A program made the translations under genes and the position numbers. From Takakia lepidozioides (Eukaryota > Plantae > Bryophyta): a stretch of DNA of 64,000 nucleotides. The DNA is taken from NCBI GenBank assembly GCA_030704615.1, contig CM060734.1, positions 32,674,001 through 32,738,000 of the forward strand, given 5' to 3'. Numbering within the stretch: the first letter of the stretch is position 1; the number at the start of each line of letters is the position of its first letter. The notes under the pieces were generated by a model. It did no database searches. It saw only the letters and a program-made list of their open reading frames with translations, and was not told the origin of the DNA. Below, piece after piece: positions 16,990 to 55,982 of the stretch.

Positions 16990-17275
<286 letters not shown>

Positions 17276-27950: not shown

Positions 27951-28506
27951 CTTCCAGGTGGAGGTAGTACATATTAAAATATCTATTCCCCAAGGCCACA
28001 TTTTCTTTACCTGTTTTTGTGAAACACGCGTCAGCAAATGTGGCCCCGAATCATGGGTGCAATCAATGCGCAGTGGTTCATGGAGTCGTTGAGTCGACTA
28101 CATATTCACTTTAATGAATAAATATCTTTATTCCATTAATCAAATTATGAATGAAAAATTTCTAGTCGCATGTGCAGTAATTAGAACCACATGTAATTTC
28201 TGCTTTTTCAAATTTTATGTATTTACGCAATTAATTAAATAGCCCGGATTTTTGCTACGACTCCAGAGTCGTTAACCCCACTTCTGCCTGCCGTCTGAAA
28301 TGCCCCCGTGGGCCCACATTGTCCGTTTCTACTCTCCAGTAGTCTCGTTTACTGCCAAGTGGTTCTCGGAGTGGTTGGCGGACATCCAGTCGATTCGCAA
28401 AAGACACGAATGCTTCTAGTGGGTGCAGCCCAACCGCAACACATTTGTTTGTGTTTGCAATGCGTGTGCAAGCCTAGGAGCTCTGGAAAAGGGCAAAGAG
28501 GTCCAT

Positions 28507-30547: not shown

Positions 30548-30620
30548 TGGGGACATCAACCTTGGAGCGTGGGGGAGGAAATGCATGCTTAGCCCGGCTT
30601 AGCTAGCTTAGGAATCCGAG

Positions 30621-35825: not shown

Positions 35826-38215
35826 TCACCAGTAATCACCACAAGAACAAATCCCATCTTCAAAGTGGTGGAAAGTAGTTAGCGTCCCATACAACAATTG
35901 CTCGGCCAACAATCTTTGAGATGAATTTGGTGGAGGTGTGGCACTCTCCACACACTCGAAGATTCTGGATGAGTCGTGCTGATCAGCCCAAAACCAATGG
36001 CCAGCTTCTCACGATGGTGGCAAAGAGAAAATTCCTTTCCTCCATATCATGCAATAAAGAGCGTGTGTCAGGCACATACCCCGCCTCCTTCATCTGTTAT
36101 GAGACCCTCTGGTACAAGTGGGTCAGGGTAACAAGAGCAAGACTAACACTGGTAATAGGTATGAAGCTGCGTAACATCTTCAAAGTGGTGGAAAGTAGTT
36201 AGCGTCCCATACAACAATTGCTCGGCCAACAATCTTTGAGATGAATTTGGTGGAGGTGTGGCAGTCTCTACACCCTCGAAGATTCTTGATGAGTCGTGCT
36301 GATCAGCCCAAAACCAATGGCCAGCTTCTCACTGTGGTGGCAAAGTGAAAATTCCTTTCCTCTATATCATGCAATAAAGAGCGTGTGTCAGGCACATACC
36401 CCGCCTCCTTCATGTGCCCATACAATCTTCTCAGCTCAGCATGGATTTCCTTGATTCTGGGATGCAACTTGACATCTGGCTCCTTTCTAACCCCTGACCT
36501 TCATCATTCTTCTCACCTTTGCAGTATCATCCCACCTGCCAGCTGCAGCATAGATGTTTGATATAGCAACACATAAGTCGCGACATCCTGCTCATCCCAC
36601 TTGAAGATAGATGTTGCCACAACCATCTCCACATTGTCGGCATGCCATGGATTCCGCAGGCACCAAGCAAGGCCTTCCAGACCACAACATATTGGATTGA
36701 TTGGCATTTTATTAATCAGGTCCACTGCCTCATGTAGTTGGCCCGCGCGTCCAGAAGGTCCACCATGAAGCCAAAGTGCTTTATTGGCGGGGCACTGACA
36801 CCATGATCTTGACTCAGGAAATCGAAGTAGCGTCTTCCTTCATTGAGTAGGTCAGTGTGGCTGCATGCAAAGAGAACACATATAAAGGTGATACTGATGT
36901 GGTTCCACGTCACCCCTTCCCCCATCATATGCTCATAGGTCTCCAAGGCCTCCATCCTACGCCCCTGTTGTGCATATCCTGCAAGCATGGCGTTCCATGA
37001 CACCAAATCTCGTTCAGCCATACTGTTGAACACTCCTTCCGCATCCTCAATGCTCCCACATTTGGCATACATGTCCACGAGTGTATTTTTTAGAATCACA
37101 TCTGGTACAATTCCAGCTTTGGCGACGCAACCATGCACCTCTTTGCCCTTTTCCAGGGCTGCCAGGCTTGTACACGCCTTGCAAACGCACACAAACGTGA
37201 TGTGGTTGGGCCTCACCCCTTCCCCCATCATTTGCTCATAGGTCTCCAAAGCCTCCATCCCACGCCCCTGCTATGCATACCCCTACAAGCATTGCGTTCC
37301 ACGACACCACATCTCGTTCAGCCATAGTGTTGAAATTAACTCCCTTTGCATCCTTAATGCACCCACATTTGGCATACATGTCCACCAGGGCCGTGTTCAG
37401 GATGACATCTGGTACAATTGCAGCTTTGACGATGTCACCATGGACCTCTTTCCCTTTTTCCAGAGCTCCCAGGCTTGCACACGCATTGCAAACACAAACA
37501 AATGTGATGTGGTTGGTTTTCCCCCCTTCGCACATCATTTGCTCATAGGTCTCCAAAGCCTCCATCCCGCACCCTTGCTGTGCATATCTTGCAATCATCA
37601 CACTCCACGACACCACATCACGTTCAGCCATATTGTCCAATACTCCATTTGCATCCTCGATGCACCTACATTTGACATACATGTCCACTAGGGCAATGTT
37701 CATAATGACATCGGGTACAATTCCAGATTTGAGAATGTCACCATGGACCTCTTTGCACTTTTCCAGGGCTGTCAGGCTTGCACACACATTGCAAATGCAA
37801 ACAAACGTCATGTGGTTGGGCTTCACCCCCTTCGCACATCATTTGCTCATAGGTCTCCAAAGCCTCCATCCCGCGCCCTTGCTATGCATATCCTGCAATC
37901 ATCGCACTCCACGACACCACATCTCGTCCAGCCATACTGTCAAACACTCCCTTCATATATGTCCACGAGGGACATTTGGAACAACTGCAGCTCTGACCAT
38001 GTCGCCATGGACGTCTTTGCCCTTTTCCAGAGCTGCCAGGCTTGCACACGCATTGCAAATGCACAGAAACGCGATGTGGTCGGGCTTCACCCCTTCCCTC
38101 ATCATTTGATCATAGGTCTCCAAAGCCTCCATACCACGTCCCTACTGTGGATACCCTGCAAGCATCGTGTTCCATGACACCACATCTCGTTCAGCCATAG
38201 TGTTGAAAACTCCCT
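35826..38215 (-). pseudogene. PLS-E-DYW RNA-editing factor pseudogene with a tandemly duplicated DYW domain
   Basis: PPR array at 36716-38215. MKEAGYVPDT...H(S/R)EKLA...NLRVC..CH...FHHFEDG is present twice (~36177-36412 and ~35857-36092). The final copy ends CSCGDYW* at 35826. Confidence 0.9.
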
Positions 38216-40364
38216 TCGCAATTTTGGTATCCAGGTAGAAAACTCGCCCTTGAGACTAGCACAATTGAAATTCATTGAGACCAAAAAGGTGAAGAATCTC
38301 ACTCTATCACGCCCTAGTGCTCCATAGTGTTGCAATCCATTGCAGGAACCATCCTGCAGAATCAAGAAAGCCTTGACAATGAGCTATCTTTATTCCCTCC
38401 CAGAATAGTCTGGCTTAGGATGAGGATATCGTCGATACAACCCCTATTTCTCTGGAAGCCTGCCTGACCTTCACTGACTGTGAGAGAATGTACTCATAAG
38501 ACGTTGTTTGTCGTAGCCTTGTGGCCATTGACCCCGAGCCCAGTTTGAGCAGAAACCAAAGGGACAGAATCTACCTCTGTCAGGGGCTGACATTGGTAGT
38601 AAGACTTACCTTTATACATAGAATAGCCCAAATTTGTTCTAGCAAACACCCCAACCCTACTCATCACACACTAGTTCCGCTGCTGAATTGCTCCCAAGAC
38701 ATAATGTGCTGAAGAGAGAGAGGATGACAATTTCCAGCAAAGATTTGCAGTGCATCTTGTTGTCTGCTTCTCTCTGTAAGCTAACAGGCACTCACCCTTT
38801 TGCCTCAATTGTCCCACCATTGCCCATAGTACATTCGTTTCTGCTGAATTGCGCAACACAATTCCGAGCCTGGATCCGACGGCGCATTCATTCAATACAG
38901 CAAATGTACAACCTGGGAAATTCCATGGAACTCCTGGAGCTTATGAAGACACAATTCCGACCCCCATTTAATCCATGAAACACCGCACTTGAGCTTGAGC
39001 TCAAGAAGTCATTTTTGGTTTTTTCGGGCATTCCGGACAGATTCCAAAAAAATTGACGACGACGATGACGTATCTACGAAACGTGGCGACGATGACGTGG
39101 CACTATGGCACCCTATTTCTGCTCTACACTAAACTAGCTTCCGACCTTCAGTCGTCGTTAGAATTTATCCTAACATACAGGTTCGCAAGTGAGAGGGGAG
39201 CAGCGGGAGGTGGGGATTTGACAGCGCGCCTTGCCGGAACGTCACCGGTATGGCCATCCCCGGCGACCGTACTGGCAAGGCTCCCACGTGTGCATTCAAC
39301 TCGTCAGGTAAGCGTAGTCTTCTCCAATAACTTGTAAGGGCTTTTTGCCCCCCAAAAATATTTCATAATAAAATTAATCCGGGCTACAATCCCCCCGTCA
39401 TAATAATAAAACCAAATGAAAAATAAATCATATGATACTAATGTCCGATCCATCGGAAAACAAATATGAAACCATGACATTAAATGAAAATCCAAACAAT
39501 CTGAAATCCAAACCAATTGAAAATAAAAAAGATATCATAGAAACAACATTCATAATCCAAATCTGCTTGCCATCGTGTGAAAATGAGCCCCACAGTCATT
39601 ACACCGATCAAATGAATATGGAATAAAATCAATGTTTGTCTTTTCATAAAACTTGAATATACCAGTGTTGTACTGGTATCAGGTTTAGGACATACCAGTT
39701 GGGTATCTATAATGGTGGAAATGTTTTTCTTATATATATATATATATATATATTATATATTCAGAGAAAGGGGAACAGGGCCCTTTTAATCAAATTAAAA
39801 TAAAAAGTGTCAAAACAAGTAAACTAACCACCCCATCTAACCGTTATGAATATCTGCGGAAATCATTAGTTCCTCTTCCATCCAAAATTCGTTCGGGTAT
39901 AGACTCCTCTCATCCGAAAAAGTTCATTATTGGGTAATATCTTTTGGGATGTTTCAGAGGAATGTCAAGTATGTACAGTTGTACAACGGTGCAGGTGCCG
40001 TTAAATTTGAATGGAAATGGGCATCTCTTCTGGACTCTTTGACATGACAGCCAAATGGCGGCTCTGTCAGTCAACCTCTCAACCAATGCACTGTTGGGGC
40101 ACCTGTGAAATAACAATTGGATTCTTTCATTAGGGTTGACATTATGCACTCCGCAGTTGGGCACTCTGTCACCATCCGCTTGGTTCGCACAGGGACACAT
40201 TTCTTTGATGTGCCAACCCGCGTTAGGAGATCTGCAAGTAGGACCGATACCTGCAATTGTGTGTAAGGACGTCTTCTATGCAGCCAAAAACTTCGCTCTA
40301 ATACACTCTGCATTCAGAAGCACCATCGGACGGTGAACTCTGCGTTCAGAAGCAACATTGGCAG

Positions 40365-42304
40365 ATGGCCTCCCAGGCCATGGGCTCCCTTGACGCGGAC
40401 TTCTTCAGTGAGGATTACCCTGTGCCATTTTCTTACGAGGCTGGTTTTGTGGTGGTGCATGAACTCGTCCTCGCAACGCAGTTTCGGTTGGAAAATGGAA
40501 CTCTATTCCTTCAGAGGGAAGTGTACGATGCCAATGGAAAACTGCTCAAGTATGCGTTCCAGAAACCTTCGCATACTGCACCAACCACACAATGGAGAGT
40601 GTCTCCAGGCAGATACAGGGTGCTTAGTGCTCCTCTGAGACAGTCTGCAGGATCGTTCGTAACTCCTAGCACGGCAGCATCAGTGGCCCAGGAGAAAACA
40701 CCCGTGGTTGTCAAAAAGGAGACGAGTACCGTTAACACTGTAGTTGAGCTTTTCGACTCATCCTCCGATGACGCATGTGCACTACCGCCCGTGGATCAGC
40801 CATGTCCACATGAAGAAGCAGATGTGGAGGAGATCACTAGTGTCATTCCTAAACTGAAAGCCATGGGTGGGATGGCAGGATTCAAGAGTGAGTTGAGGGG
40901 ATAGACTGGAGCACTTTCAATATTCAGAGGGTGGCATTCTTGCCGGAATCTTTTGATGGTAATACTATTTTCGAGCTGCCTCCTCCTGGTCGCGTGGGGG
41001 GAATTTCCAGTCTCTTGGAAGGAATGGACAAAAAGCACGATGGGCACCCTTGGTGCCGCACAAAAACCTCCAATATTCACAACAACGACAACCTCATATT
41101 TAGGCGAACAGTCTGTAATGGGCACCTGAAATGCGAGAACATGAAATGCAGACACTTCGCATTGTCAGGTGTGCAAAACCAAAGCGAATGGGATGGTGTC
41201 AGTGAGAATCCATTCAAGCCTGGGGTGACACCACCATACAGTAACACTTTTGTGTGCAAGTTCTGTAGGGTACCACCTTGCTGCCTTGCTTTGTGTGGCG
41301 CCAAAATGTATTATGTGGTGCATCGATTCAAAACCCTGACTAGAGCCTGTGTCCATTTCGGTTTTCACAACCACCCTGTGTCCAAGGGGGATTATAGGGA
41401 GAGCGTTGACACAGTCTCGCGTCTGATAAGGCAAGAGTTGGATACCAATCCAACTGGAACCACATCTGCAATTGCCATGGGGGCGAGCAAGTACTTTCTG
41501 GAAAGCCGTATTCTGTGTGCATCAAATTCGGTTGGAGGAATACTGGAGGGACCAGCTTTGGACATTGTTATGGACCATTTCTCCACTTTGACTTCTCCAA
41601 ACATTAGGAATCAGGTGAACGCTTTAAGAATGGGCTCTGGGAGCCGAGGTTATATGGACAATATTATGGATTTGAAGAAAAGGAGCATGTACGACTACAT
41701 CCAAGATAGCGTTTTCCCGGGACAAGGAGCCAGGAAAGTGTTCTTGTTCAAAATGTCCACAAAAGGTGAGGGCAGCGGGGTCAGCTTGGTTAAACGTATG
41801 CAGAAGGGTGGCGATCTTGGCAGCTGCTTCCTTATGTTCGATCACGTCAAGAGGGTTAAAGACTGGACCACAATGGCATGTCATGTTTACGACCCTGTGT
41901 ATCAGCGGGTCATGACAATTGCAGTGTGGGACATGCAGTCAGAGGACACAGATTCACAGCAGCTCATGTGGGAAGCTCTCATTCGTGTTATGGCCTCCAA
42001 TGGTCTCCCATCTCCTAATTTTGTTGGTTTTATGGCCGATAGTGCTCAAGCTAACTTCAACGCTATCCGCATTGTGTTCGGGACAGGAGATCCAAAAGTG
42101 CCAATGCCATTGGACACAATCCCTGGACAAACACACAAAGACATACATCAAGCCAGATATGCAGAGTATGCATCGTCAACTGTGCAAACAGTACAAAGAC
42201 GCCAAAACTATGGGGGAAGCGAATACATTGTTCCAGACAATTCGTGCCTGGTGGTACTCATCTGGAGCGGCATCAAAGGACAGCATGAGGGCACTGGAAG
42301 ACTG
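40365..42304 (+). pseudogene. MULE-like DDE transposase, N-terminal part with a GCM-like zinc domain
   Basis: W...CNGHLKCENMKC, candidate catalytic Asp in LMFDHV and GFMADSA, and a CxHW remnant. Interrupted at ALED|WFAFW by element B copy 2. Confidence 0.72.
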
Positions 42305-42656
42305 TGTCAAGTTAAATAAGCACAGTGTGAAAACAGCTAGAATAAAACTAGTTATTTGTATTTAACACTTGGATTTAGGTCAAGTGTTAAATCAGGTGTC
42401 AAGTTTAGTTTGACACCTGGTCTGTCTTATCTTCACGAGAGCGGCAGTCGCGCGGCTCATCTCTCTCGAGTTGAGCCTGCGCGACCGAGCTCCTTCCTGC
42501 GTTTAGAAGCTGTGTGTGTTTATGATGGGAGTGTAGGTTGTTGTGGGGTGGAGTCCCCATAGCTTGGGGTGCCCCTGGCTCGACTTCTATTTCAAAGAGT
42601 GATGATTTTGGTTTCCATGTTTTGTGTCAACAGTGTGTTAAAGAGTCTTTCTATCA
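42305..42656 (+). repeat. 5' terminal A repeat (352 bp) of element B copy 2
   Basis: Appears identical by eye to 53623-53974; the ORF track gives identical 68-aa translations at 42356 and 53674. Confidence 0.95.
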
Positions 42657-42668
42657 CTCGAGAGAGAT
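42656..42668 (+). promoter_or_regulatory. Candidate self-priming primer-binding site
   Basis: ACTCGAGAGAGAT is the exact reverse complement of 42459-42471 inside A. It is conserved in copy 1, and there is no TGG-type tRNA PBS. Confidence 0.7.
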
Positions 42669-43549
42669 CACCTCTTACCTGTGAGTGCAAGGTAGGAGTT
42701 GAGGGTTAGCACTTGTATGATTACCTGTGTGAGAGTAGTGCTTAGTTTAAGAAGCTTTAAAATATATATATATATATATATATGCAGGTTTCGATCAGCG
42801 TTGGTTCTGGCATAAGGCCGCCGGGCAGGACGGAGCTACACTGCATGGAAGCAGCCTTCGTTTTGGTCAGTGAGGAGATATCATGGTGGAGCAGCAGGAT
42901 GATGCGCAAATGTAAGGAAAACTGTGTCTGTTGGTAGCTACTGACAACCGCAACTCTGTCCCTGGACTTCTTCTCCGGAGGTGGAAGCCTGTGTGCAGCG
43001 TGCATGCAAGAGTGTGGTTGTGACAGGGGAACAAGCGCTTGCGGTTGCATTACTACTGCAAGTTGGGCACTCGGTGCGTCGCTATAACTGCAATTGTACA
43101 GGAGCACTGTGAGAGGCAGATTGTTCTGCAGCCTTGCTATACCTGGTCAGTCCAATGGTGACACATCCATACCTTGTTAAAGCAATATGGACAGTTGTCG
43201 ATGAGGACGGCTCTATGAAGGACACTGCGAGCTAAGAAGGGCTCGGGTACAAAAGCACACACTGGAGCGTTTAAGCAAGTTAGGGCGGGAAAAAGAAAAA
43301 CAGGCCCAAATAGCCAAGCACATGAAGTAGTGAATGTTGATGGAAGAAACCTGTGACACTCCCATTTTGCTGGAGGAGATCGTTGATTAATTGATGTCCC
43401 CGGAGCTTCAGGACAGGCCCTACAATCGCTGGCTAACAAGACTGATTTACAAGCAAAACCTGCAGGGCAATCTGCCGAGAGCCTCATCTGCTTCTCGGAG
43501 GGGTTTCCGTAAGTTCCTTCTTTCCCAGGCCCTTGTGTCGACCTTCTCC

Positions 43550-43935
43550 ATGTTCCTTTGTCTCTCTCACCATCCTGCTGCCTCGGCAAGCTCGCAGTGG
43601 AGACCTGCTTGCGGGCTGTTTTCTGGATTTAGAGTGGGTTTGAAGTATAGAAAAGAACTTGGAGATTACAGTGGGCAGGTCGCAGCCGGTGCGTCCTTGA
43701 CGTGGAAGGCCACAACGGAGAGGAATGTGGTAGCCAGGGCTGCTGGAGATGCCCCAGAGTCAGAGGTCGAGATTGTTCCTGAGGTCACCATCCCAGCCAT
43801 AGTTTCCCCTCAAGTCAAAAAGCATAATTGTTAAAGAAGAAGGCTAAACGATTGGAGCTTCGAAGGAAGAGGCTGGTGCGCAAGCGCAAGTTAAGGAAGA
43901 AAGGCCAATGGCCTCCTTCCAAAATGGCCAAATCA
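43550..43935 (+). pseudogene. PSRP5: Captured plastid-specific ribosomal protein PSRP5 (cL37) coding sequence
   Basis: Transit-peptide-like N-terminus (..VVARAAG), then LKKKAKRLELRRKRLVRKRKLRKKGQWPPSKMAK. One frameshift; no intron visible. Confidence 0.82.
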
Positions 43936-44582
43936 AGAATGTATAGGGCCCAGGAGGGTTCAAGGATAAGAAGAAAAGAAAGTATCACGTCTGCGGGAGG
44001 TCCAACAGGTCCAAGGAGCACACGTACAACACCACAGTAGAACCACAGACATCAAAAAAAAAAAGGGCAGCTCAATTCTCAAACTTCACACACAACAGGT
44101 GTCGCAATCAACGGCCAAGCTCTTGTATGCTCTGCTGCTCTGCTCCTGTTGTGCTGAATGTTGGTGAAGTGAAGCTGTGGTTTCGATGTGGCAGATGTGT
44201 TGTGCAAGTTCCAGCAACCATCCACGAATCGTTCGATTGCAGGCCGCCTGTCCATAAGCCATGAGGGTGTTGCGCAGTGCATCTCTTGATCTGCTCTTGA
44301 AATCGCCCCTACCTGGACGAACTACCTGGATGTGTTGGGAACTCGTAGGTGACTTGGGAGCAGTTATAATGACAAAAGCGTTTTGGTGTTAAAAAAAAAA
44401 AAAAAAGCCTTTTTGATCTAATTTAAATGTTTAAAGAGCCTGGTTGGTCATATCTTTGTCAAATGGACTCCGTTTGACTCAGTTTTTGGGGGAATAGCTG
44501 CAGAAAGGGGAAATCTACCTATCTAGACCTGGTTTCTGTTTTTGGGACTCTGCTAAAAATCTATGGAATTTTTAGAGTGTGA

Positions 44583-45413
44583 GTGTGCCATGAAAGATCC
44601 ACAATCTTGTTTCTAGAACCTGTGCTGGTCTATATGAGAGACAAATCTGTGGATGTACTCCTTGTAGGCTGGGGGAAGGAGGACGAATTGAAGGGCAGGT
44701 CTCTTCTCTTAGCCTGTGCACCAAGGGGACAGGATCTATGTTTCCCCCAAGGCACTCAGACTGATTTGAGTGGAGAACAGTTGTGACGGTGTGATTGCAT
44801 ACTGGGAGTCAGGCCTTATCAGTAGACAACAGACTGCTTCAGTTGGCATTGAGGGCCTCATATCGCCTTGGGCCGTCAGAACTCTGTTGGAGCCAGCAGT
44901 TCTGCAGCTGTAGGTGAAATACCAAAGTGGGTGGAAGCAGGTATGGAACACAGCCCAAGACAGCCCCGGGGACCAAGGTGTTCAGCCACAAGGCCGTGGT
45001 GTACTGGAGCAGAGGAGCAGGATTCGACACAAGTTTTCTGCAATCAGACAGGTTTGCAACCGGATACGCCTGCACCAGGGCAACCACGATCTGGGGTTCA
45101 TCAGCAAACATGTTTGTTGTGCGTGAAGGGAGGCAGTCATTCGCAATGATGACCCCGCAACCGTCTCAAAGCTTTCGAGTTGAAGACTATCAGACCCTAC
45201 CCTTTGTTTTCTTTAGTGTTCAGTGAGCGGGAATAGCAGATGTTGCATTTGTCTCTACCTGGCAGAAAGAGGAGGAGGGTTGGTTAGAGCGAGCTACTGT
45301 AGCTTGGGACAAGGTTAGTGGCAGGTTTCTGGACATAGATATACCTCCTACCCCTTATACCATCATGCAGAGCGAGGCACTATTGAGAGAAGTCTGGCAG
45401 TTGAATAGCATAG
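44583..45413 (+). pseudogene. Extra unknown ORF of element B copy 2 (many indels)
   Basis: Homologous to 15639-16470 minus (QGTQTDLSGEQL, SSSAAVGEIPKWV, DYQTLP). Confidence 0.5.
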
Positions 45414-45938
45414 ATCAGGATTAGATCTTGCTTGGTCGGGCTTTCTATTCTTCCCTCCATCTCTTACTATTTTCATACCTTATACTTGTAGTTGCCAAAG
45501 CCTCTTGGTGGAGGCCAGTCAGTCCGGGGTTTGGGCTGGGATATTCTGCAGGATCACAAGCGTTGCTGCTGGATTTTGGGTGTGGGTGTGTTGATGTTTT
45601 GATTTTCTTGTGTGTTGGATCCCCCCCAACACCTGCATGCTTGACTGTGCGCCATGTTGGTTTTTGTGTGGGCGCTTGTGCTTTCATAGGGATTAGGCCG
45701 GATTTGATCACCGGTCAATCCTAGAGTATGCTGTCGGTGGTGAGGCTGGATGATGACCAGCAAGACCACCAGTGGTTTCTTCTATGGTGAGGCTGGTTTG
45801 ATGACCAGCCAACCATAGGAGTTCTTGCGGTGGATGCAGGTGCAGGTGCCCTGAGCCATTGGGATATGAACCCTTAGACTGCAACAGGTGCCCACCCGTG
45901 TCACTATTAGATTAGGTACTAGAGCCTTATAGTGTCAC

Positions 45939-48895
45939 GTGGAGGAGTGCACATTGTGAGTGTCATTACGGAGTTACCCAAGGGGTTTGGAGGGGAGTAC
46001 GGCCTACAGGCAGTAACAGTGAGAGTGGGTTCACAAGACGAGGTATTCGTTTCAGACCACCTTCACCGCCACCCTCAATTACTGTAGAGTCAGACACAGA
46101 CTCGGAGGCTTCACAACAGGTGTGGCAATTTCCATTCGCCCATTGTGTTGTGGGAAACATGGAGGAGATGTATGGAGCTACCAAGGGCCTCGTAGTACTC
46201 TGGAGCTGTGGGCACAATCGAGTTGGATGACTTTATCCAGGAGATTCGACACTGGTGTGATTTGCAGCAGGATGCCAATCCACATCTATTCACCCATTCA
46301 CCCCATTCATGGCGTGGAACGGGACTGTTCCAGCATTTGGAAGGCCGCCTATGGACGATTACCACGAGTTCAGGCGAGGACATGAAGCAGAGATTGAGGA
46401 GTGGAGTATGTATTGGTCACCTGACTACATCTCCATTACTCGAGGCACGACGCGACCAGTAGCTTGCCTCAGTACCAATAGCTCCCACTGCCAGCACTAG
46501 TAGTGGAGCAAGTAGTGCGTGGTACTTCTGCAGGTGTACCAGTTCAGAAGTGCTACTACTCTCCTCCCTGCCACAGACTACAACACATGTGCCTAGATTC
46601 AACCCGGTGGTGGAGTTCTTCCAGGAGTTGCGGAGAACTACCAAGGTGTACGGACAGAGAAGCTGCGAAGTTTGCAAGACTTCCAGCGCAAACCCAGTGA
46701 GAGCCTGCGAGAGGCGTACACTCGTATGAGGCGCTTGATAAGTGTGACCCAAGTTTACTGAAGCTCAGGCAATCCAGTTTTGGTATGGAATTCTGGACAA
46801 GGAGCTCAAGAGAAGGGTGCGAGATGCAACCCTGTTACAAGCAGCCCAACCCACATTTAGCAGATGTGTTTCTGCTGGCTGAGCGATTGAGCTCAACATG
46901 GTGGAGGAGCGAGTTGTTACAATTGGATTGGTAGGACATGCCTGTACTACGGTGCACAGTTGTCAGCCCACAAGCACAAGGACTGCCCAACAGCGTGGTC
47001 AGGGGGCAAGGTTGCCCAGCCCATGGAGCTTACACAGGGGACCTCAGGTGCAGAGGCCCGTGGCAATCTTTGCATGCCAACAGCAACCAGGGGGTGATTG
47101 TTGGACATGGCGGAGGACCCCATGTCAAGAGAGATTGCCCAGAGAGTGGCAGAAGGCCGGCACAAGCACAGCCTGCACAGTTGCAGTGTGGGCATTGTGG
47201 CAAGTATGGGCATGGAGATGCCCAGTGTTATGACTTGCATCCTGAGTTGCGCCCAGGCCAGTTTCCAAGGGAACAATGGTGGCCGGGGGCGAGGTGGACC
47301 AGCCCAAAGAGGACGAGGTGGTCGGGCACGAGGTGCAGGCCAAGGCAACCTCCACATGGCCAAGGACGCGGAGGTCAGGGTGTTGACCAAGGCATGGCCA
47401 ATCGGCTTCAGCAGCTAGAGCAGAGGCTCGCTGCCATGGCTATAGCTCAGGCGGTACCGGCTCCCAGGCGGGATGGCCCACCTCCTGCTCTGAGGGAGGA
47501 GATATGGGCGGAATGGGATTCATGTGCGGAGCAGCACTACCATTAGAGCAGGTGGAGTCTGCTGCAGCCGTGACTCGAGGAGCAACACGAGTTCCTGAGC
47601 CACGAGGTGCAGAGGTGGAGTTGGATCCACAACGTGGGAGGCAAGCCGTCAGGCAAGGCTGCCTCAGTCATTCACCTTGGCGGAGACAGTGTCAACGCCA
47701 TCCATGGCACCTAGTTCTCGCCCGACTGTTACCGAGGCGGAGGTTACTATGCCATTGGGGAGAGCTACCCGTGCAGCACTGACACCTACTACCAGGCTAG
47801 TGCAGCCGGTGTGTTATTGGGAGCAGCCACCTCTGTGTGTCAAGCCCCACTGTTCTCGGCAACCATGATTGCGACGCCGGGAGTGAGACCAGCTGCAGTG
47901 TTCAGACTAGCAGCAACACTCTGCGAGAGTGGAGAGGTCACTTCATCTTCTGCGGAGTTAGTAAAAGGTGTAGTGGCAGAGGGATCCTCGGATTTGAGGG
48001 TCAAGACTGCCACGGCAGCGCCCTGGCAAGCTGCAGCTGCCAGATTGACGGAGCTGCCAGCTAGGCCAGCCTTTGAGCGCGCCATGGTGACACCTGGAGT
48101 TGTCTTGTTAGACAACCAGGGAGGCATTTTCACTTTGAGTGGACCGGCAGGCAAGAAGTACCGGCCACTGCGGGTCTTGTTGGACTCAGGAGCTCAGCCA
48201 CTGATGTTGGGCAGAGCTGCTATTGCAGGTTTGGGCCTCATGGAGGCGGATATGGAGCCTTGTCCTTTCCAGATACAGACATCTCTGGGAGGATCAGAGC
48301 AGGCTCGCGGCATGACACGGCATCAGTTGGCTATTAGACTGCAGCCGGATCATCCTGTAGATGGCTCAGTGATGCGAGCCAAGGCCATTGTGACAGACGC
48401 GGTCTCTTACGATGTCCTCGTTGGTGGGGCAGTGTTATACCCCATGGGCTTCACCCTGGATTTCTGGGAGGAGTCAGCATCCTACAGGCCTGGATGGCAG
48501 TCAGGGGATGGTCGCCGTGCACAGCTCCCTGTGACATTCATTGGGGGTATTGCAGCTGCTCAGCGGGGCAAGATGCCAACACTAGCCGCCTTCACAGCTG
48601 CAGTCAGCTGGCCTGGAGAGTTGCTGGAAGGCAATGCCCATGCAGAGGATGTGCCACCTCCAGCAGAGCAGGATGACATGCATGGTACGGCGGAGTTGCC
48701 TGCCATGGTTGCTCACACTCCGTTGTGGGTACGAGCAAGGATTTGCAGCACGCTGCTGATGGACGGGTGCAACAAGCTTGGTTAGAAGCTTTTGTACCGT
48801 CAGGAGAGGAGGAGAGTGCGGTGATTGTACCAGGGCCACCTCAGTTGTCGCCATTGGACACCACACCTCTTGTGTGGCAGCGACCGGATGAAGGC
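45939..48895 (+). pseudogene. gag: Element B copy 2 gag and protease
   Basis: GTIELDDFIQE, HVKRDC and CGHCGKYGHGDAQC knuckles, and LLDSGA in ORF 47811..48785. Dense indels before 47800. Confidence 0.82.
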
Positions 48896-50142
48896 ATATG
48901 CCTTCTGGACTTATTTGGCGGGATCAGCACTGGATTGGCTGCAGTGCTGCAGGCAGGTGTACGAGTTCGACGTTACCTGTATGTGGAGAGGGATGAGACT
49001 GCACGACGCGTCTCACTGCGCCATGTTGCTCAGATGGTGCAGCAGCATCCTGAGTTGTTGCCGGTGTCTGCAGTTCGTGGATATCAGCAGCCTTGCCAGC
49101 AGACATTGCGTTGCTGGGGGCGCAGGATTTGGAGCGGGTTGGCTCCATTGATCTGGTAGTGGCAGGTTGGCCCTGCCAAGGGCATTCATCAGCCGGGCAT
49201 GGCAATGGATTGCGAGACTCGAGGACGGGTCTGTTTTGGGAGATGGTGCGGATTTTGCGCCACTTGCAGCTTCATCAGGCTGTATCTCCGGCATACATCT
49301 TGGAGAATGTGCCACTGATGGGTGATTCTCGGGCCAGGGTGATGGCCAGTGTGCATCAAGTCCGGTCGTGGCTTGGGTCAGCAGTATTGCTGGATGCAGC
49401 TGCAGTGGGGTCACGGGCTCATCGTCCACGACTATGGTGGACTAACTTGATGCCACCCGCACTGCTCAAGCGTGCATTTGATGGGGTGCAGCGGCCAGCA
49501 CACCTCACCGTGGATGGCATTTTGGACACAGGAAGGCAGTCTCAACGTGTGAGACACGATGACCGTTCGCCTTTGGCAGTGGTCAACAGAGTGGGTCAAC
49601 CACGAGCAGCATTACCTACACTGCTCAGCTTCCCAGGATCCCATGCTTTTCGGGATGGTGGACCTGGCCTCCTGTGGGATGCTCAGTTGCAGCAGTTAGT
49701 GGAGCCTAATGCCGACGAGCGAGAGCGGGCTATGGGGTTTTCCACTGGGACCACGGCGGTGCCTTCTCTTTCTGAGGCATCACGTCGTCAGGTGTTGGGG
49801 CAAGCAATGGATCTCAATTGCTTGACCTGGATTGTCAGCTTGGCTATGGCTGAGCAACGTAGAGTGCGGAGTGCACTTCCCTTGATGGTCTCTCTGCCTA
49901 CCGAGACGGTACAGGCAGCGAGTGGGGGCGAGCCGGTGAGGACCACGAGGTGTAGACATCCATGGCACATGTGGGAGGTGCTCGAGGTTCAGAGGGAGTT
50001 GGCAGCGAAGGCAGCTGTGATGGATGAGGTTGGGGATTCTTCTCGGGATGAGGAGGTTCTCAATGATGAGATGATGGGGCAGGATGAGGCCTTGTCATTG
50101 ACTGAGCAGGAAGGGGGTACTGCTCAAGAGGTTGCAGCATAG
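48896..50142 (+). CDS. DNMT3-like C5 cytosine methyltransferase domain (one apparent frameshift near 49090), ending at a UAG
   Basis: Motifs I (LFGGISTG), II (YVERD), IV (GWPCQG), VI (ENV), VIII (HRPR), IX and X (LGQAM) occur in canonical order in ORFs 48725..49159 and 49093..50142. Confidence 0.92.
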
Positions 50143-53100
50143 CAACCACGGGACGCGTCCTCTACCTCTAAGCCCACTGGACTTAAGGTTGCAGTTACGG
50201 AGGACAATTGGGAGCCTGATATTGGACCCATTGTCACCGGAGGAGAGAGACGACGTATACGGCGGTTCCTGAGGGCTTACAGGAATTGCTTTGCCTTCAG
50301 TTTGAAGGACTTGGGAGCACTGAAGGGTCAAGAGATCCGTATTGAGTTGGCCACTGACACGCCAATCTTTCGGAGACCCTATAGATACAGTGACATGGAG
50401 AGGTCTTTGATTCAGATGAGGACTCAAGATCTCTGGGAGGCAGGTTTGGTGGAGCTCTCTGGTGGAGAGTATGCTTCAGCCACAGTGATGCCAGCTAAGA
50501 AGGATGTCTATGGCAATTGGACGGAGAGACGTATGTGCGGTGATTACCGGCCTGTAAATCGTCAGACCAAGTCCGATAGGTATGCCATGCCAACACCAGA
50601 GGAGATCTTTGATGCCATTGGGCATTCCAAGGTCTTTAGCACGTTGGATTTACGATCCGGATATCACCAGTTGCCGATCAAGGAGGCGGATAAGCAAAAG
50701 ACGGCATTCTGGGGGATCAATGAGCACGGGAAGGATTGCCTATACCAGTGGCGGTTCTTACCATTTGGGCTTAAAAACGCTCCCGCTGAGTTTCAAAGAG
50801 TCATGGACAGGATTCTAGCAGGGGTGGAGTTTGCTCGGTGCTACATAGATGACATCATCATCTTTAGTGCTACGGTGGAGGAGCATGAGAGACACCTTCA
50901 GGGGGTATTTGAGCGCTTGAGGACGCACGGATTGAAGTTACATCCGGGCAAGTGCAAGTTTTTCCACAACCAGATTGAGTATCTGGGTCACATGATATAT
51001 CCTGGAGGATTGGGGGTACAACAGACTAAGGTAGAGTCCATTGCACAGGTTCCACGCCCCACGGATGTGAGCCGAGTTCGAGCTTTCATGGGGTTAGCAA
51101 ACTATTACAGACGGTTTGTTAAGGGATTTAGTGCCATTGCAAAGGCTCTAACCAAGCTGACCAAGGTGGACCAGGAGTGGCAGTGGGAAGATGAGCAAGA
51201 ACAAGCTTTTCAAGAGCTCAAGGCGAGGTTGACCTCGGCGCCCATCTTGAGACGACCTATCAGGGGGCGTCCTTTTCAGCTGCATACAGATTGGAGCATG
51301 CTGGGGCTTGGAGCGGTGCTCACACAGGTGGATGATGAGGGAAGAGAGTTCGTAGTGGCTTATGCTAGCCGCTCGAACAATGCTGCAGAGTCTAAGTATA
51401 GCTCATATGAGGGAGAATGCTTAGCTGCAGTGTGGGCCGTGGCACACTTCAGGTGCTATCTATACGGCAATCTCTTCACCCTTGTCACGGATCACCAACC
51501 ACTCAAGTGGTTGATGGAGTCAGACAAGCTTACGGGGAAGCTTGCACGGTGGGCACTCATCCTTCAAGAGTATGACTTTCAGGTGGTGCATCGACCGGGT
51601 TTGGTCAATCGAAATGCAGATGGGTTGAGTCGCAATCCATGCACGAGCCAGCAGGATGACACTGGAGCTCGGTGGCATGGTGAGACGGACGAGGAGATGG
51701 TGCCCGGATGGCATGCATCTGCATTTCTGTGTATCTTGGCAGCGGAAGGCCAGGTTGGACCTACAACAGGGATGACTGTAGATCAAGTGTCTGAGGACCC
51801 TGAGGCCAGCAATGAGCAGGGTGGCGCCAAAGATATACATGAGGATTCAGTTGTGTTGGACTACCTCCGCAGTGGAGACACGGCAGCCACTATGACTGCC
51901 AAGGAGAGGGATCGGATCCTACAACGAGCCAAGAGGTTCAGGTGGGAGGGGACACACCTGCTCCGAGTGTGGGAGGATGGTCGAGTGAGGATTGTGCCTC
52001 ACCCAACACAGCGGGCACGGTTAGTGCGGCATGCCCATGAGGAGTTGGGGCATTTTGGGGTGCGACGCACTCATAGTCTACTGCAGGGGCAGTATTGGTG
52101 GCGTGGTATGCACACAGAGGTGCAACAATTTGTGGCTAGGTGCATGGTGTGTGACAGGGTGCGTGCTTCATTCAACGCCCCTACTCCACAATTGCACCCT
52201 CTTCCGATCATGGGATTGGGCTACAGGTGGAGTCTTGACTTCGCAGGGCCGTTGCCACTGACCATGCGCCACAACAAGTACGTGTTGGTGATGGTGGAGC
52301 ACTTCTCCAAGTGGATTGAATTGGTTCCATTGCCTGATAAGGCTAGTGAGGGAGCTGCGTATGCATTCCTGGATTGTGTGCTTAGCCGATTCGGTGCTCC
52401 AGCTGAGGTACTCACGGACCAAGGGAGAGAGTTCTTGGGGGAGTTTCAGGCTTTGTGTGACAAGGCCTTGATAGACCACCGCACCACTTCTCGGGATCAT
52501 CCTGAAGCCGATGGCTTGGCAGAGAGAGTTGTTCAGACAGTAAAGAGGGGTTTGCGCAAGTATGGCTTGCAGAAGGGACACCTAGGAGATTGGGACCTTC
52601 AGTTACCCTGGTTAGCCATGGGCTACAGGTTCAGCAAGCAAGCATCACTTGCCTCCTCCTCACCATACTTTCTTCTCTTTGGCCGAGAGCCGGATTTGCC
52701 TACATCCATTCGCAGAGAAGCTGCTACAGTTCTTAACCTTGACGATCCGGACGTGTGGGCACGTGCATGTGAGCAGCGTGCAGAGTTGTTCAAGAGAGTC
52801 ATGCCTATGGCTTTCGAGAACCTTGCCATTGCACAACACCGTGATACGTTGAGGTATGCTACCATACGTGGTGGGGGCTATCGTCCTGGGGTTCGGAGAT
52901 TCAACCCTGGTGACTATGTCTATCTGCAGCAGACTGCTCCTACGACCCTGGATGTGACTGCAGGACGTGTTATTTTGAGGGTTCGAGAGGTCTTGCCCTC
53001 AGGCGTCTTGGTCTTGGAGGGTCGGGATGGCATCACTTGGAAGGACCATGTGCGTAATTGTGCGCCATGTCACCTTCCGAATGTCGATGGCAGGATTGAC

Positions 53101-53277
53101 CCAAACCTGGCAGTGGTATCTGCAGGTTTGAGGTGCATGTTGTGTGGGTCTGCTAAAGGGGCAGCCACCATGCTGGTATGTGATCGGTGCTCTAGAGGTT
53201 GGCATATGGGATGCTTGACTCCACCTCTTGAGATGGTTCCGGATGGGGATTGGTTATGTCCACATTGCATTGGATAG
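50143..53277 (+). CDS. pol: Open RT-RNase H-integrase-PHD polyprotein frame
   Basis: Open from the UAG to 53277. Motifs: RRMCGDYR, LPFGLKNAP, YIDD, HTDWS, HHCC (HEELGH..CMVC), D-D-E (SLDFAG, TDQGREF, GLAERV) and a C-terminal C4HC3 PHD at 53134-53268. Confidence 0.96.
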   Translation, partial: QPRDASSTSKPTGLKVAVTEDNWEPDIGPIVTGGERRRIRRFLRAYRNCFAFSLKDLGALKGQEIRIELATDTPIFRRPYRYSDMERSLIQMRTQDLWEAGLVELSGGEYASATVMPAKKDVYGNWTERRMCGDYRPVNRQTKSDRYAMPTPEEIFDAIGHSKVFSTLDLRSGYHQLPIKEADKQKTAFWGINEHGKDCLYQWRFLPFGLKNAPAEFQRVMDRILAGVEFARCYIDDIIIFSATVEEHERHLQGVFERLRTHGLKLHPGKCKFFHNQIEYLGHMIYPGGLGVQQTKVESIAQVPRPTDVSRVRAFMGLANYYRRFVKGFSAIAKALTKLTKVDQEWQWEDEQEQAFQELKARLTSAPILRRPIRGRPFQLHTDWSMLGLGAVLTQVDDEGREFVVAYASRSNNAAESKYSSYEGECLAAVWAVAHFRCYLYGNLFTLVTDHQPLKWLMESDKLTGKLARWALILQEYDFQVVHRPGLVNRNADGLSRNPCTSQQDDTGARWHGETDEEMVPGWHASAFLCILAAEGQVGPTTGMTVDQVSEDPEASNEQGGAKDIHEDSVVLDYLRSGDTAATMTAKERDRILQRAKRFRWEGTHLLRVWEDGRVRIVPHPTQRARLVRHAHEELGHFGVRRTHSLLQGQYWWRGMHTEVQQFVARCMVCDRVRASFNAPTPQLHPLPIMGLGYRWSLDFAGPLPLTMRHNKYVLVMVEHFSKWIELVPLPDKASEGAAYAFLDCVLSRFGAPAEVLTDQGREFLGEFQALCDKALIDHRTTSRDHPEADGLAERVVQTVKRGLRKYGLQKGHLGDWDLQLPWLAMGYRFSKQASLASSSPYFLLFGREPDLPTSIRREAATVLNLDDPDVWARACEQRAELFKRVMPMAFENLAIAQHRDTLRYATIRGGGYRPGVRRFNPGDYVYLQQTAPTTLDVTAGRVILRVREVLPSGVLVLEGRDGITWKDHVRNCAPCHLPNVDGRIDPNLAVVSAGLRCMLCGSAKGAATMLVCDRCSRGWHMGCLTPPLEMVPDGDWLCPHCIG

Positions 53278-53524
53278 TGGGAGTGGATACAACCATGGGA
53301 GGCTAACAAGAAATGCAAGGCCCAGCTACTAGGAGACCTTGAACACACGAGATCTTGGCTCAAGTTCATAGATTGCAAGACGGCGACTAACGATGGGGCT
53401 ACTCTTGTACCCGGCCTCTTGGTTGATAGAGTTTGAGCTCGATAAAACAGTGATAGAGGACTTAGTACGGCTGTGGCTATTACATCTTGTAGCTATCTGG
53501 AGGTAGGGGACCTATCCACCAGCT

Positions 53525-54060
53525 AGGGGGGCGATTGTGCTAGACTACTTTATTGTGCATATATGTGTGGTGTGGTTTGGACAGCGATGTAGTTGTGTAG
53601 CGATATGTATGCGCACGACAGCTGTCAAGTTAAATAAGCACAGTGTGAAAACAGCTAGAATAAAACTAGTTATTTGTATTTAACACTTGGATTTAGGTCA
53701 AGTGTTAAATCAGGTGTCAAGTTTAGTTTGACACCTGGTCTGTCTTATCTTCACGAGAGCGGCAGTCGCGCGGCTCATCTCTCTCGAGTTGAGCCTGCGC
53801 GACCGAGCTCCTTCCTGCGTTTAGAAGCTGTGTGTGTTTATGATGGGAGTGTAGGTTGTTGTGGGGTGGAGTCCCCATAGCTTGGGGTGCCCCTGGCTCG
53901 ACTTCTATTTCAAAGAGTGATGATTTTGGTTTCCATGTTTTGTGTCAACAGTGTGTTAAAGAGTCTTTCTATCATTGTGCTAGACTACTTTATTGTGCAT
54001 ATATGTGTGGTGTGGTTTGGACAGCGATGTAGTTGTGTAGCGATATGTATGCGCACGACA
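53525..54060 (+). repeat. PPT followed by the B1-GC-A2-T-B2 terminal block of element B copy 2
   Basis: AGGGGGGCGA at 53525-53534, B1 at 53536-53620, GC at 53621-53622, A2 at 53623-53974 and B2 at 53976-54060 (85 bp, matching B1). Confidence 0.95.
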
Positions 54061-55273
54061 ACTGGTTCGCATTTTGGCACTTCCGTTACCGACAGCGGGG
54101 AGCGGCCATGACAACGGTGAGTGGTTTGCATTCACCTTCGTTTGGGTGCTTCGGATATATCTTTCAGGGTCCAATCCTAATATCGGCTTTGTGTTTTTTG
54201 CCTTGCAGCATATGTCCATTGAGGAGATGTCGGACATGCCTTCCTGCAATCTAGCGGAGACAGTGCACAATGCGTGGTTGCAGCAATCCCACTTCTCGAC
54301 ACCACGTGTTCCCCTGGATCAGAGATGGAATTGCGGAACATCCACAGGTGAGGGCTATTCTGCCCCAGACCGGACCCCTGCATCAAACACTGTCACTGCA
54401 ATGGTTGAAGACCAAAACGTGGTGCCGCATATAATCGAGTCCATGGGCTTGGACGAGGTTTGGCATATAGAACGCACAAGTGCTGGATCGCGTGTGAAAT
54501 GCACGGCGATCAGGGCCAGCAATCATGAAAAATGTACATCATTAATATCCAGAGGGAAAGAACGCACTGCAGCTCCTATATTCACGGGTTTGTTTCTCCC
54601 TTACGGACAATGCGAGGCAAAGAACCACAAGTTTTGGTTTTGCGCTGACGATTGTGGGAGATGTGTGCATGGGACAGGGAGGCCTTCCGTGGTGAGGAAG
54701 CCTATTCCACCAACCGTGTGGCCTGTGAAGATGGGCACAGGTTTCACTCACCGAGAGATCGCAATGCTGGAAGAGGCGGGTTTCTCCCTAGCCAGATATT
54801 CCATTGCACGTGAAGGTGCTTCAAGTACAAGCGGTTCACGGGTACCTCCGCCTGACGCTCACTTGTGGCCAACCAGACGGAATGGGAAGCTGGTTCGACG
54901 ATTCCCTCCAACCGCAGAACACTACGACAAAATTGAGTCCGCCAGAATGCTTGACGCTCGTGTTGCGGGTACAATGGAAGTGCCTGATCCAGGGTATGGT
55001 CGGGTGTTCACCATGATCTCATCCGCATCTACGCTGCAGGACAGGACGTACGACATCACTGTTTCCAATTTTCCCAATTGTACATGTCCTGATTTTGTTG
55101 GTATGCTTTCAAGTAGTTTGGGAAAGAGAGGGAAGTTCATACCGTGCAAACACCTTTACTTCGTCTTCTTGAGAAGGATGGTTTGTGATCCAAAGCACGA
55201 CTTCTTCATTCACCAAGCCACTATGAGTTTCAACGAAGTCAACACACTTCTACAGCGGGATACAAGCCCATAA
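54061..55273 (+). pseudogene. MULE-like transposase C-terminal part with SWIM zinc finger
   Basis: WFAFWHFRY, CNLAETVHNAW (candidate catalytic Glu) and SWIM CTCPDF...PCKH. Confidence 0.75.
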
Positions 55274-55455
55274 AAATCTGAGTTTTCCTTGACCTAAACT
55301 TGTAATGGAATGACTGTTCAAGTCCAGTGTCTCTCAATGTATGTCGTCTAACATCTTGGCTATGCGTGGGTGAATGCATTTGTCGCATTGGTTTGTCATT
55401 CTTTTTTCATTAGCAAACACAAGAAACTACCTTCAGTTAGACAGAGTATCAAATC

Positions 55456-55770
55456 AACCTCGTGTCAACACGAGGTTTACTTGAAGTTCTCCAAATCCCC
55501 CTTGTGATGACACAAGGTTGATTTTAGTTCTAAGAAAACAACATCGTGTCAACACGAAGCTCATTTTTGTTGCAAGAAGTAAACCTCGTGTTAACACGAG
55601 GTTTACTTGAAGTTCTCCAAATCCCCCTTGTGTCGACACAAGGTTCATTTTATTTCTAAGAAAACAACATCGTGTCAACACGAAGTTCATTTTTGTTCCA
55701 GGAATATAACCTCGTGTTAACACAACGTTCATTTCAGTTCTACGAAATGAAGCTCCTGTTAACAGAAGAT
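55456..55770. repeat. Array of palindromes (YGTGTYRACACR) with an exact 42-bp period and a 126-bp higher-order unit
   Basis: Cores start at 55461, 55503, 55545, 55587, 55629, 55671 and 55713, with a degenerate one at 55755. Confidence 0.9.
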
Positions 55771-55982
55771 TGAACTCCAGGAAAGCCCGAAACCCTTCAT
55801 CCGTTTCACCTTCATGTGGTGAAATCAGCAGTTGGGGGCTCCACGGTTATAGGCCCACCTTCTTTGTGGTGACGTGGCATGACCTGGACCAGGCTCACGC
55901 CACGTCAGCAGCGTGAGCGTAGGCTCACGCCACATCATCGCTGTGTGAGCGTACGCTCACGCGCTCACGCGGTAGCGTCGTT

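Follow-up and report, generated by a model that had tools for sequence, protein, structure and literature searches.

In a window of 64,000 nt of the genome of Takakia lepidozioides (contig CM060734.1), two copies of a retrotransposon with a DDE integrase were characterized, in which two direct repeats, A and B, are split and arranged in the order A1-internal-B1-GC-A2-B2. Both copies have the termini TGTC...GACA and are flanked by target-site duplications (TSDs) of 4 bp. The same permuted layout was found in liverworts, Klebsormidium, Closterium and about 30 metagenome loci. On the sequence evidence we consider it probable that the ends of the complementary DNA (cDNA) are joined and that the DDE integrase then opens an internal palindrome and inserts the permuted form A-internal-B-GC-A-B. 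A little less firmly, we lean towards the view that, in the lineage extending from charophyte algae to liverworts, the integrase sites have moved from the long terminal repeat (LTR) tips to this internal palindrome, with obligatory permuted integration from a circular or end-joined form.

Structure and coding content of the two copies

All positions are given in the numbering of the window, in which copy 2 lies on the + strand and copy 1 on the − strand. A repeat finder and direct reading gave for copy 2 the order A1-internal-polypurine tract (PPT)-B1-GC-A2-B2. A1 (42305–42656, 352 nt, starting with TGTC) comprises the 3' part of U3 (about positions 1–154 of A), followed by R and U5, and is 100% identical to A2 (53623–53974, 352 nt). 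The PPT (AGGGGGGCGA, 53525–53534) adjoins B1 (53535–53620), which is 86 nt long counted from the T that follows the PPT, constitutes the 5' part of U3 and ends in GACA; B as first read, of 85 nt (53536–53620), is 100% identical to its counterpart in B2. The dinucleotide GC (53621–53622) stands between B1 and A2, and B2 (53975–54060; 53976–54060 for the 85-nt B) ends in GACA at the 3' terminus. The TSD ACTG occupies 42301–42304 and is repeated at 54061–54064. Copy 2 was inserted very recently, because its repeats are 100% identical.

Copy 1 runs from 18897 down to 7043, with the order of parts, the termini and the B/A and A/B joints of copy 2. It consists of A1 (18542–18897, 356 nt), an internal region (7563–18528), B1 (7562–7478, or from 7561), GC (7477–7476), A2 (7475–7128) and B2 (7127–7043, or from 7126). 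Its TSD reads CATC on the − strand (GATG on the + strand) and lies at 18898–18901 and, matching it, at 7039–7042. The coordinates, termini and TSDs that an earlier note on this DNA had assigned to both copies were all borne out.

When 42305–54064 (copy 2 and one TSD) is deleted, 40931–42304 and 54065–55273 are joined in an uninterrupted open reading frame (ORF) of 860 amino acids, with a SWIM zinc finger in its 3' half (the 54065–55273 side); the restored ORF suggests a MULE/FAR1-like transposase-derived gene. Because this ORF is restored on removal, copy 2 is a single clean insertion in a MULE/FAR1-like host ORF, with exact boundaries. The same empty-site test on copy 1 gave no convincing restored frame. 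The probability that two independent 4-bp TSDs arise by chance is about 1.5e-5, and this value, the restored 860-amino-acid ORF and the recurrence of the architecture in unrelated genomes together exclude chance as the source of the layout.

At the internal B/A junction of copy 2 (53617–53626), the 10-nt perfect palindrome GACAGCTGTC (GACA-GC-TGTC) is composed of both integrated ends, placed back to back and separated by 2 nt. It has the form of the LTR-LTR junction of a retroviral circle whose spacer measures 2 nt. Since the PPT reads ...GGGGGGCG(A), the start of B can be set at (A)TTGTG. The T at the A2/B2 joint (53975), which had been taken for a spacer, need not be one, since the same (A)T precedes B1 and B2. 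The A-to-B joint is then an exact abutment of the U5 end with the U3 start, ambiguous by 1–2 nt.

The landmarks of reverse transcription are placed differently from the integrated ends. The 13 nt that begin with the last base of A1 (ACTCGAGAGAGAT; 42656–42668 in copy 2, with the corresponding region at 18529–18542 in copy 1) are the exact reverse complement of positions 155–167 of A (42459–42471 in copy 2, the presumed transcript start). Complementarity at this place extends over 12 nt in Calypogeia, 19 nt in K. nitens, 12 and 14 nt in two Closterium elements, and 10–16 nt in two metagenome families. Between lineages the primer and primer-binding site (PBS) sequences differ yet stay complementary (covariation in six lineages); at one given position, a 12-mer would match by chance with a probability of about 2e-5. 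A PBS adjoining A1 in this way bears the signature of Tf1-type self-priming, a reading in which the 5' end of the transcript is inferred; such a site would put the transcript start near A155 and the end of U5 at the 3' end of A.

A G-run PPT adjoins B1 in every related element examined. Because the PPT adjoins B1 and the PBS adjoins A1, the LTR defined by reverse transcriptase (RT) is B-GC-A, and the cDNA would be BA-internal-BA. The earlier note had already proposed this LTR from the window, and the proposal gained from the comparison, since in every lineage the PPT adjoins B1, and the covarying self-primer site adjoins A1.

In young copies A1 equals A2 and B1 equals B2, and among old copies divergence within the A pair is about as great as within the B pair, which fits with both repeats being regenerated in the manner of an LTR at each cycle. 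Separate inheritance of the repeats through RNA, as in DIRS elements, is disfavoured because it would not homogenise them. Positions 1–149 of A are identical in all four A copies of the window. Differences begin abruptly at about A150, the presumed U3/R border, and those between the two copies are common to A1 and A2 within each. Beyond about position 149, A is only about 85% identical between the window copies, and the leader that follows is unrelated. The pattern has the look of subfamilies having recombined at the U3/R border, which is what would be expected of an intermolecular first strand transfer.

Coding content was determined with Pfam profiles, stop-interrupted frames being searched as separate ORF pieces. 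Copy 2 carries an intact pol ORF of 1044 amino acids (50143–53274, +) encoding RT (RVT_1, 2e-32), RNase H (RT_RNaseH, 7e-36), an integrase zinc finger (Integrase_H2C2, 4e-16), the DDE core (rve, 6e-14) and a C-terminal PHD finger (PHD, 2e-10). When 18 relatives were aligned, the motifs YIDD and HHCC proved invariant, as did the residues D699/D759/E794 (D,D35E). Upstream, on the same strand, are an ORF piece with a C5 cytosine DNA methyltransferase (49054–50139; DNA_methylase, 3.6e-13, and 2.6e-13 in copy 1; PF00145 in relatives) and one with a weak aspartic-protease match under the cutoff (47715–48782; gag-asp_proteas / Asp_protease_2, E about 0.02, the homologue in copy 1 being alike). No tyrosine recombinase was matched even at E ≤ 1 in ORF pieces of at least about 85 amino acids (copy 2, both strands; copy 1, forward). 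The identification as a Gypsy element with a DDE integrase, made earlier from translations, was thus upheld.

An in-frame TAG (50140–50142, +) separates the methyltransferase frame from the RT frame in both copies; the stop-to-stop piece of copy 1 also starts with QPRDASS, the residues that follow the TAG of copy 2. This TAG may be a site of programmed read-through or a frame boundary. In two relatives (L008 and L010) the methyltransferase and RT-integrase parts are likewise separate gene calls.

The two copies are 95.5% identical over most of their length, and each is defective at different places. In its internal region copy 1 has the domains of copy 2 (protease, again weak, DNA methyltransferase, RT, RNase H and integrase) and a weak gag match, in a coding region broken into several frames. 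In blastn the copies aligned only at element positions 1–366 and from 2033 to the end, leaving a 5' leader of about 1.7 kb unalignable (42669–44337 in copy 2, +). ORF pieces with TPR repeats (TPR_14, 2.6e-07) lie at 17410–17919 (−) in the leader of copy 1, which is foreign to copy 2; this leader may be a captured host gene fragment or that of a different subfamily.

The element has the protease-RT-RNase H-integrase gene order of Ty3/Gypsy elements, with RVT_1, RT_RNaseH and rve (the protease weakly matched), and their insertion signature, TG...CA termini with a short TSD, in both copies and in 12 or more relatives. A full LTR at each end is absent; the complete B-GC-A occurs once, internally. 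Of the features of the DIRS order it has the split direct repeats A1...B1A2B2; a tyrosine recombinase and TSD-less insertion are lacking. With the clade of KnitGypsy-Dnmt3 it has in common a C5 DNA methyltransferase in gag-pol and the A-internal-B-A-B layout. Judged from its sequence, it is a Ty3/Gypsy-type LTR retrotransposon of a streptophyte clade with a C-terminal PHD-finger integrase and, usually, a C5 DNA methyltransferase.

Distribution of the permuted layout

The closest pol proteins, 72–78% identical, are from the liverworts Calypogeia fissa, Riccia sorocarpa and Marchantia, while those of K. nitens are about 43–46% identical to the pol of the window. For the survey, loci were fetched around pol relatives, and a protein-profile scan of JGI metagenome contigs added 80 more, several of which are one locus in independent assemblies; A and B were mapped with family-specific queries. 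The layout, already regarded as a family property on the strength of two copies, extends to the whole clade, from liverworts to Klebsormidium, Closterium and metagenomes.

The arrangement A-internal-B-GC-A-B with a TSD was found in Calypogeia (L001; palindrome GACA-GC-TGTC, TSD GTCA, RT-defined LTR ends TT...TA) and in K. nitens (L003; GGCA-GC-TGCC, TSD TCTT, LTR ends AG...TT). PPT-B-GC-A-B at the 3' end was found in Riccia (L004; GACA-GC-TGTC, LTR ends AT...TT) and Marchantia (L002; decayed GATA-GC-TGTC), both with no detectable A1. It was also found, always with GACA-GC-TGTC, in Closterium (L005, with LTR ends GT...TT, and L007), in a second K. nitens family (L009) and in ENA contigs (L008 and L010), the 5' end lying outside the contig in the last three. 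The flanks of the two Closterium elements, which are rearranged or truncated at B2, showed no TSD. The Tetrabaena locus (L006), fragmented by runs of N, was left unclassified.

Among the JGI loci, A-internal-B-GC-A-B with a TSD was found in L032 (AAGG), L045 (ATGT), L046 (TTTA), L052 (TGAC), L076 (CCAC) and L040 (ATTA/ACTA), and many further loci of this layout have only their 3' end in the contig. A-internal-B with a TSD was found in L015 (ATTA), L035 (CCAA), L058 (TGTT) and L070 (TATT), and in L069 and L081 with three of four bases matching. The survey as a whole yielded 14 perfect 4-bp TSDs and three more at three of four bases. Layouts were reproduced across independent assemblies (L025=L040=L091 and L064=L065).

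Elements from Closterium to liverworts share the integrated termini TG(T/C)C...G(A/G)CA together with the GC spacer, and the CA-GC-TG junction is conserved in liverworts, Klebsormidium, Closterium and the ENA and JGI contigs. Each integrated end corresponds to one half of this internal palindrome. The tips of the RT-defined LTR are not conserved and usually are not TG...CA (TT..TA, AT..TT, AG..TT, GT..TT). Because the integrated termini and the GC are conserved while the LTR tips vary, the integrase appears to recognise the halves of the internal palindrome and not the tips of the RT-defined LTR; this contrast is the strongest sequence evidence for such recognition.

A conventional BA-internal-BA form, which the earlier note had expected never to occur, was seen at none of about 24 visible 5' ends (none with B-GC-A or A-B-GC-A). 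B was never found alone in the survey. The form A-B-A-internal-B, which had been thought possible, was absent from all of about 20 elements with both ends visible, and from all of 12 young ones. B-A-B was present at the 3' end in 12 of the 12 elements reached through intact-ORF protein matches, which constitute the young sample. A control analysed in the same way, a chromodomain chromovirus with 35% pol identity (L092), had conventional LTRs of 1080 bp at both ends, with TGT...ACA tips, a 4-bp TSD and a PPT adjoining the LTR.

C>T/G>A changes have eroded the palindrome of old copies, its 2-nt spacer being kept. An exact search for CAGCTG mostly failed in the loci of the JGI profile scan, the palindrome being decayed in old copies, and an exact scan of the metagenome contigs for a liverwort-type 28-mer of the B end and palindrome gave no match. 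Across the old copies L018–L091, C>T/G>A transitions have left both the CA-GC-TG palindrome and the CG/CHG sites beside it heavily decayed, a decay that is consistent with methylation-driven deamination of elements that encode a cytosine methyltransferase.

The predicted A-internal-B forms were present in metagenome loci (L015, L019, L028, L030, L033, L035, L039, L054–56, L058, L061/66, L069–71, L075 and L081). In one metagenome host they account for roughly half of the old copies (about 16 loci); they have TSDs and were reproduced in independent assemblies (L054=L055=L056, L058=L063, L061=L066); none was found among the 12 elements of the young sample. As proof of integration from a one-LTR circle they were rejected, a deletion between B1 and B2 fitting equally well. 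Their absence from the young sample favours an origin by B1 × B2 deletion over a one-LTR circle.

Two further JGI loci are unusual. The element at 8693–15223 of L011 (pol about 43% identical) is a genuine insertion with the TSD ACCC, the termini TGTC...GACA, the palindrome GACA-GC-TGTC and a B of just 38 nt. Its A2 and B2 are separated by 12 nt and an inverted copy (15043–15185) of the 143 nt that follow A1 (8791–8933). No self-primer complement was found in L011, and its RNA ends could pair as a panhandle. In the contig L060 (9171 nt) the first 123 nt recur as the last 123 nt, and it also carries a related pol and a GTCAGCTGTC site; its circular appearance most likely stems from a repeat collapsed in the assembly graph and not from a physical circle.

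Proposed integration mechanism and its alternatives

The proposed cycle would begin with reverse transcription of conventional layout, self-primed from the PBS after A1 and giving BA-internal-BA. The U5 end of this cDNA would then be joined to the U3 start to form the A-to-B joint, by way of a two-LTR circle, a head-to-tail or protein-bridged intermediate, or an end-to-end template switch of RT. The DDE integrase would nick after each CA of the palindrome in the PBS-proximal LTR, leaving CA-3'OH ends with 5'-GC overhangs, the form of 3'-processed retroviral DNA, and insertion of these ends with a 4-bp stagger would give A-internal-B-GC-A-B. In no other permutation would U3 (B and about 154 nt from the start of A) stay downstream of the promoter, and this one alone would therefore be heritable.

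The joint itself carries traces of such a step. In old copies the A-to-B abutment is exact in 13/17 and has indels precisely at the joint in 4/17, namely one additional nucleotide (+1 nt) that repeats the final base of the PPT, a gain of about 19 nt, a loss of 2 nt where there is an AT microhomology, and a loss of about 6 nt. In the same 17 copies no indels were found at the PPT/B1 border or at B1-GC-A2. The A-to-B joint therefore looks as if it were made afresh in each cycle by an imperfect joining step. As for cutting, the integrases of prototype foamy virus (PFV) and human immunodeficiency virus type 1 (HIV-1) cleave palindromic LTR-LTR junctions in vitro to give 3'-processed ends, and that of foamy virus apparently also does so in vivo (PMC1180852, PMC1905944, PMC4372172).

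Several points weigh against this proposal. The joining and cutting steps are inferred entirely from integrated copies. A two-LTR circle has two identical palindromes, and random opening would give equal numbers of A-internal-B-A-B and A-B-A-internal-B, while the latter is found in none of about 20 elements and B-A-B in 12/12 young ones (binomial p about 2e-4 under 1:1). A symmetric circle cut at random is thus disfavoured, and an extra directional determinant that the model does not supply is needed, because the opening is strictly one-sided, always at the PBS-proximal palindrome. Deletion between the A repeats cannot rescue random opening, because lone-B 3' ends would remain, and these are absent from the young sample. 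The A-internal-B copies require no one-LTR circle, since B1 × B2 deletion suffices, and the aberrant A-to-B joint of L011, with its inverted leader copy, is not predicted by the model. In the retroelements studied, two-LTR circles are minor by-products that depend on host ligase, and the LTR-LTR junction is regarded as a poor substrate for retroviral integration, the linear form being the accepted precursor (PMC11054761).

The required direction might come from an end-to-end template switch of RT in place of a symmetric closed circle, from a replication intermediate with double-stranded DNA at the PBS-proximal LTR alone, or from integration of linear DNA followed by closure of the U5 and U3 ends by host end-joining. 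Of what the earlier note had put forward, there is good support for the integrase acting on a permuted intermediate; that the route leads through a ligated two-LTR circle in particular is a conjecture, and the one-sidedness counts against a symmetric circle opened at random.

The same one-sidedness, with A-B-A-internal-B never seen, would be expected if no circle were involved and RT itself made a linear A-internal-B-GC-A-B with GC ends, which the integrase would trim by ordinary 2-nt 3' processing. The GC has the exact size of the dinucleotide normally removed in that processing, and the small indels at the A-to-B joint, exact in most copies, also fit template jumping by RT. Such a route would call for non-canonical plus-strand initiation at the B/A border and for a template switch that copies B after U5. 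We regard it as unlikely, though worth keeping in view: the conserved PPT adjoins B1 rather than A2, the end of B is not purine-rich, and B2 is followed by host DNA, which offers nothing to prime minus-strand synthesis. Attempts to derive A-internal-B-A-B by RT strand transfers alone (self-priming, read-through polyadenylation in B2, re-priming at the PPT) yielded no scheme that dispenses with U5-U3 joining. Quite doubtful, in turn, is a scheme in which the left-LTR palindrome of linear BA-internal-BA is cut and both halves are inserted, a short B fragment and the A-internal-BA body entering the target before host end-joining ligates the free U5 and U3 ends. Its sequence outcome would be identical, it accounts for a joint that is mostly exact and occasionally bears indels, it makes a free circle unnecessary, and the position of the left palindrome, just 86–220 bp from the DNA end, is a possible source of asymmetry. 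It would leave a chromosome break at each insertion, and the right-LTR palindrome is equally available, so that the one-sidedness is still unaccounted for. To our knowledge, split-end integration of linear cDNA has no precedent.

Replication of the DIRS/Ngaro type, with a recombinase acting in trans and the integrase irrelevant, is suggested by the A...B-A-B order, which is the hallmark of PAT/Ngaro elements according to two papers (PMC8557442, PMC5890265). We hold it to be very improbable, since the element has no recombinase domain, the TG...CA termini and 4-bp TSDs of 14 or more elements contradict it, the catalytic residues of the integrase are invariant, and A1/A2 and B1/B2 are homogenised like LTRs. 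Hardly credible at all is an artefact, be it the later rearrangement of a conventional BA-internal-BA insertion, one insertion nested in another, or misassembly of the B-A-B block: the TSDs lie directly at A1 and B2, the host ORF is restored on excision, the same layout occurs in independent assemblies from different laboratories and in re-assembled metagenome loci, and the survey contained no conventional copies, while the control chromovirus was conventional. Joining of the cDNA ends followed by opening of the internal palindrome is the reading that we retain.

Surroundings, implications and known systems

Elsewhere in the window, arrays of units of about 300 nt that translate to PPR repeats, with many broken ORFs, occupy 23000–38300 (−) and constitute a cluster of PPR genes or pseudogenes. 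Fragments of other Gypsy elements of conventional type lie at 4278–5306 (+) and 29972–30544 (+); they comprise a gag with a zinc knuckle and a protease, as well as the chromodomain-bearing tail of an integrase. A 42-nt unit with short inverted repeats is repeated in tandem (55451–55786) just downstream of the 860-amino-acid ORF that copy 2 interrupts.

If the proposed mechanism is correct, evolution can bring the integrase of a retroelement to rely on an internal palindromic junction as its sole natural substrate, and the question is reopened whether LTR-LTR junctions are ever productive intermediates; the clade would provide a working case, in nature, of the circle-junction model given up for retroviruses. 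It would form a mechanistic bridge between DDE-integrase LTR elements, the split-repeat elements of the DIRS/Ngaro type and the circle-junction transposons of the IS3 type. Split direct repeats would not be diagnostic of tyrosine-recombinase elements, LTR finders that expect two full terminal LTRs would miss or misclassify the clade in bryophyte and algal genomes, and LTR-divergence dating should use A1/A2 and B1/B2 and not whole LTRs. The permuted layout would separate the promoter/U3 from the integrated 5' end and confine the A-to-B joint to the 3' end; as a speculation, it may solve the duplication of promoter and polyadenylation signals in two LTRs. Young copies in culturable, transformable hosts (relatives of Marchantia, and Klebsormidium) would make the mechanism directly testable.

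The supposition of the earlier note, which knew of no description, held only in part: the layout had been recorded once. The legend of Fig. 4c of de Mendoza et al. 2018 (Nat Commun 9:1341, PMC5890265) describes KnitGypsy-Dnmt3 as having DIRS-like repeats and Gypsy domains. The paper gives no TSDs, termini, palindrome, PBS/PPT placement or integration mechanism for this element, so that on those points the supposition stood. Searches of full texts for split repeats with an integrase, Gypsy elements with a DIRS layout, LTR-element circle junctions and Marchantia PHD integrases gave nothing further, subscription journals and Repbase reports lying outside their scope. A large plant LTR survey does not cover the taxa concerned. 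TOC1 of Chlamydomonas, with its 'unusual LTR arrangement', was considered as a precedent and rejected, being now classed as a non-autonomous DIRS element. As far as can be told, what is new comprises the distribution in liverworts and Zygnematophyceae, the TSDs and TG...CA ends by which DDE integration is shown, the conservation of the internal CA-GC-TG junction, a PBS that appears to be of the self-priming type, the one-sided permutation, the heterogeneity of the joint and the mechanistic reading.

KnitGypsy-Dnmt3 of K. nitens is, like the window element, a Gypsy LTR retrotransposon with a Dnmt3-type methyltransferase in pol, and the K. nitens element L003 has the same A-internal-B-GC-A-B layout, with the TSD TCTT. 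The element of the window is a different, liverwort-like member (pol about 43–46% identical to the former, in contrast to 72–78% to liverworts). Self-priming has been described for Tf1/Sushi and predicted for the Tcn1 chromoviruses (PMC6317226). In these elements the PBS pairs with the start of their own transcript and not with a tRNA, as appears to be the case here, and the order of pol domains is the same; they differ in having conventional LTRs and a chromodomain, where the window element has a permuted LTR and a PHD-finger integrase tail. PAT/Ngaro elements have the same split direct repeats, A1...B1-A2-B2, and some have a methyltransferase, but they carry a tyrosine recombinase, lack a DDE integrase and typically have no TSD, unlike the window element with its DDE integrase, TG...CA ends and 4-bp TSDs.

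The retroviral two-LTR junction resembles the window palindrome in being a CA-spacer-TG formed by abutted ends, of which double cleavage at CA gives 3'-processed ends. A model of this junction as the substrate of the integrase was reportedly put forward by Panganiban and Temin in 1984; the circle-junction route was considered and then abandoned in retrovirology in the 1980s. In retroviruses the junction exists only in unintegrated circles, whereas every integrated, heritable element of the window family permanently contains the junction in uncut form, and, unlike in retroviruses, the ends of the RT-defined LTR are not the integrase sites. In copy-out-paste-in transposition of the IS3/IS911 type, a circle is integrated by a DDE enzyme from the superfamily of retroviral integrases, which cuts the abutted ends, a few bp apart; these elements are bacterial DNA transposons, without reverse transcription or LTRs.

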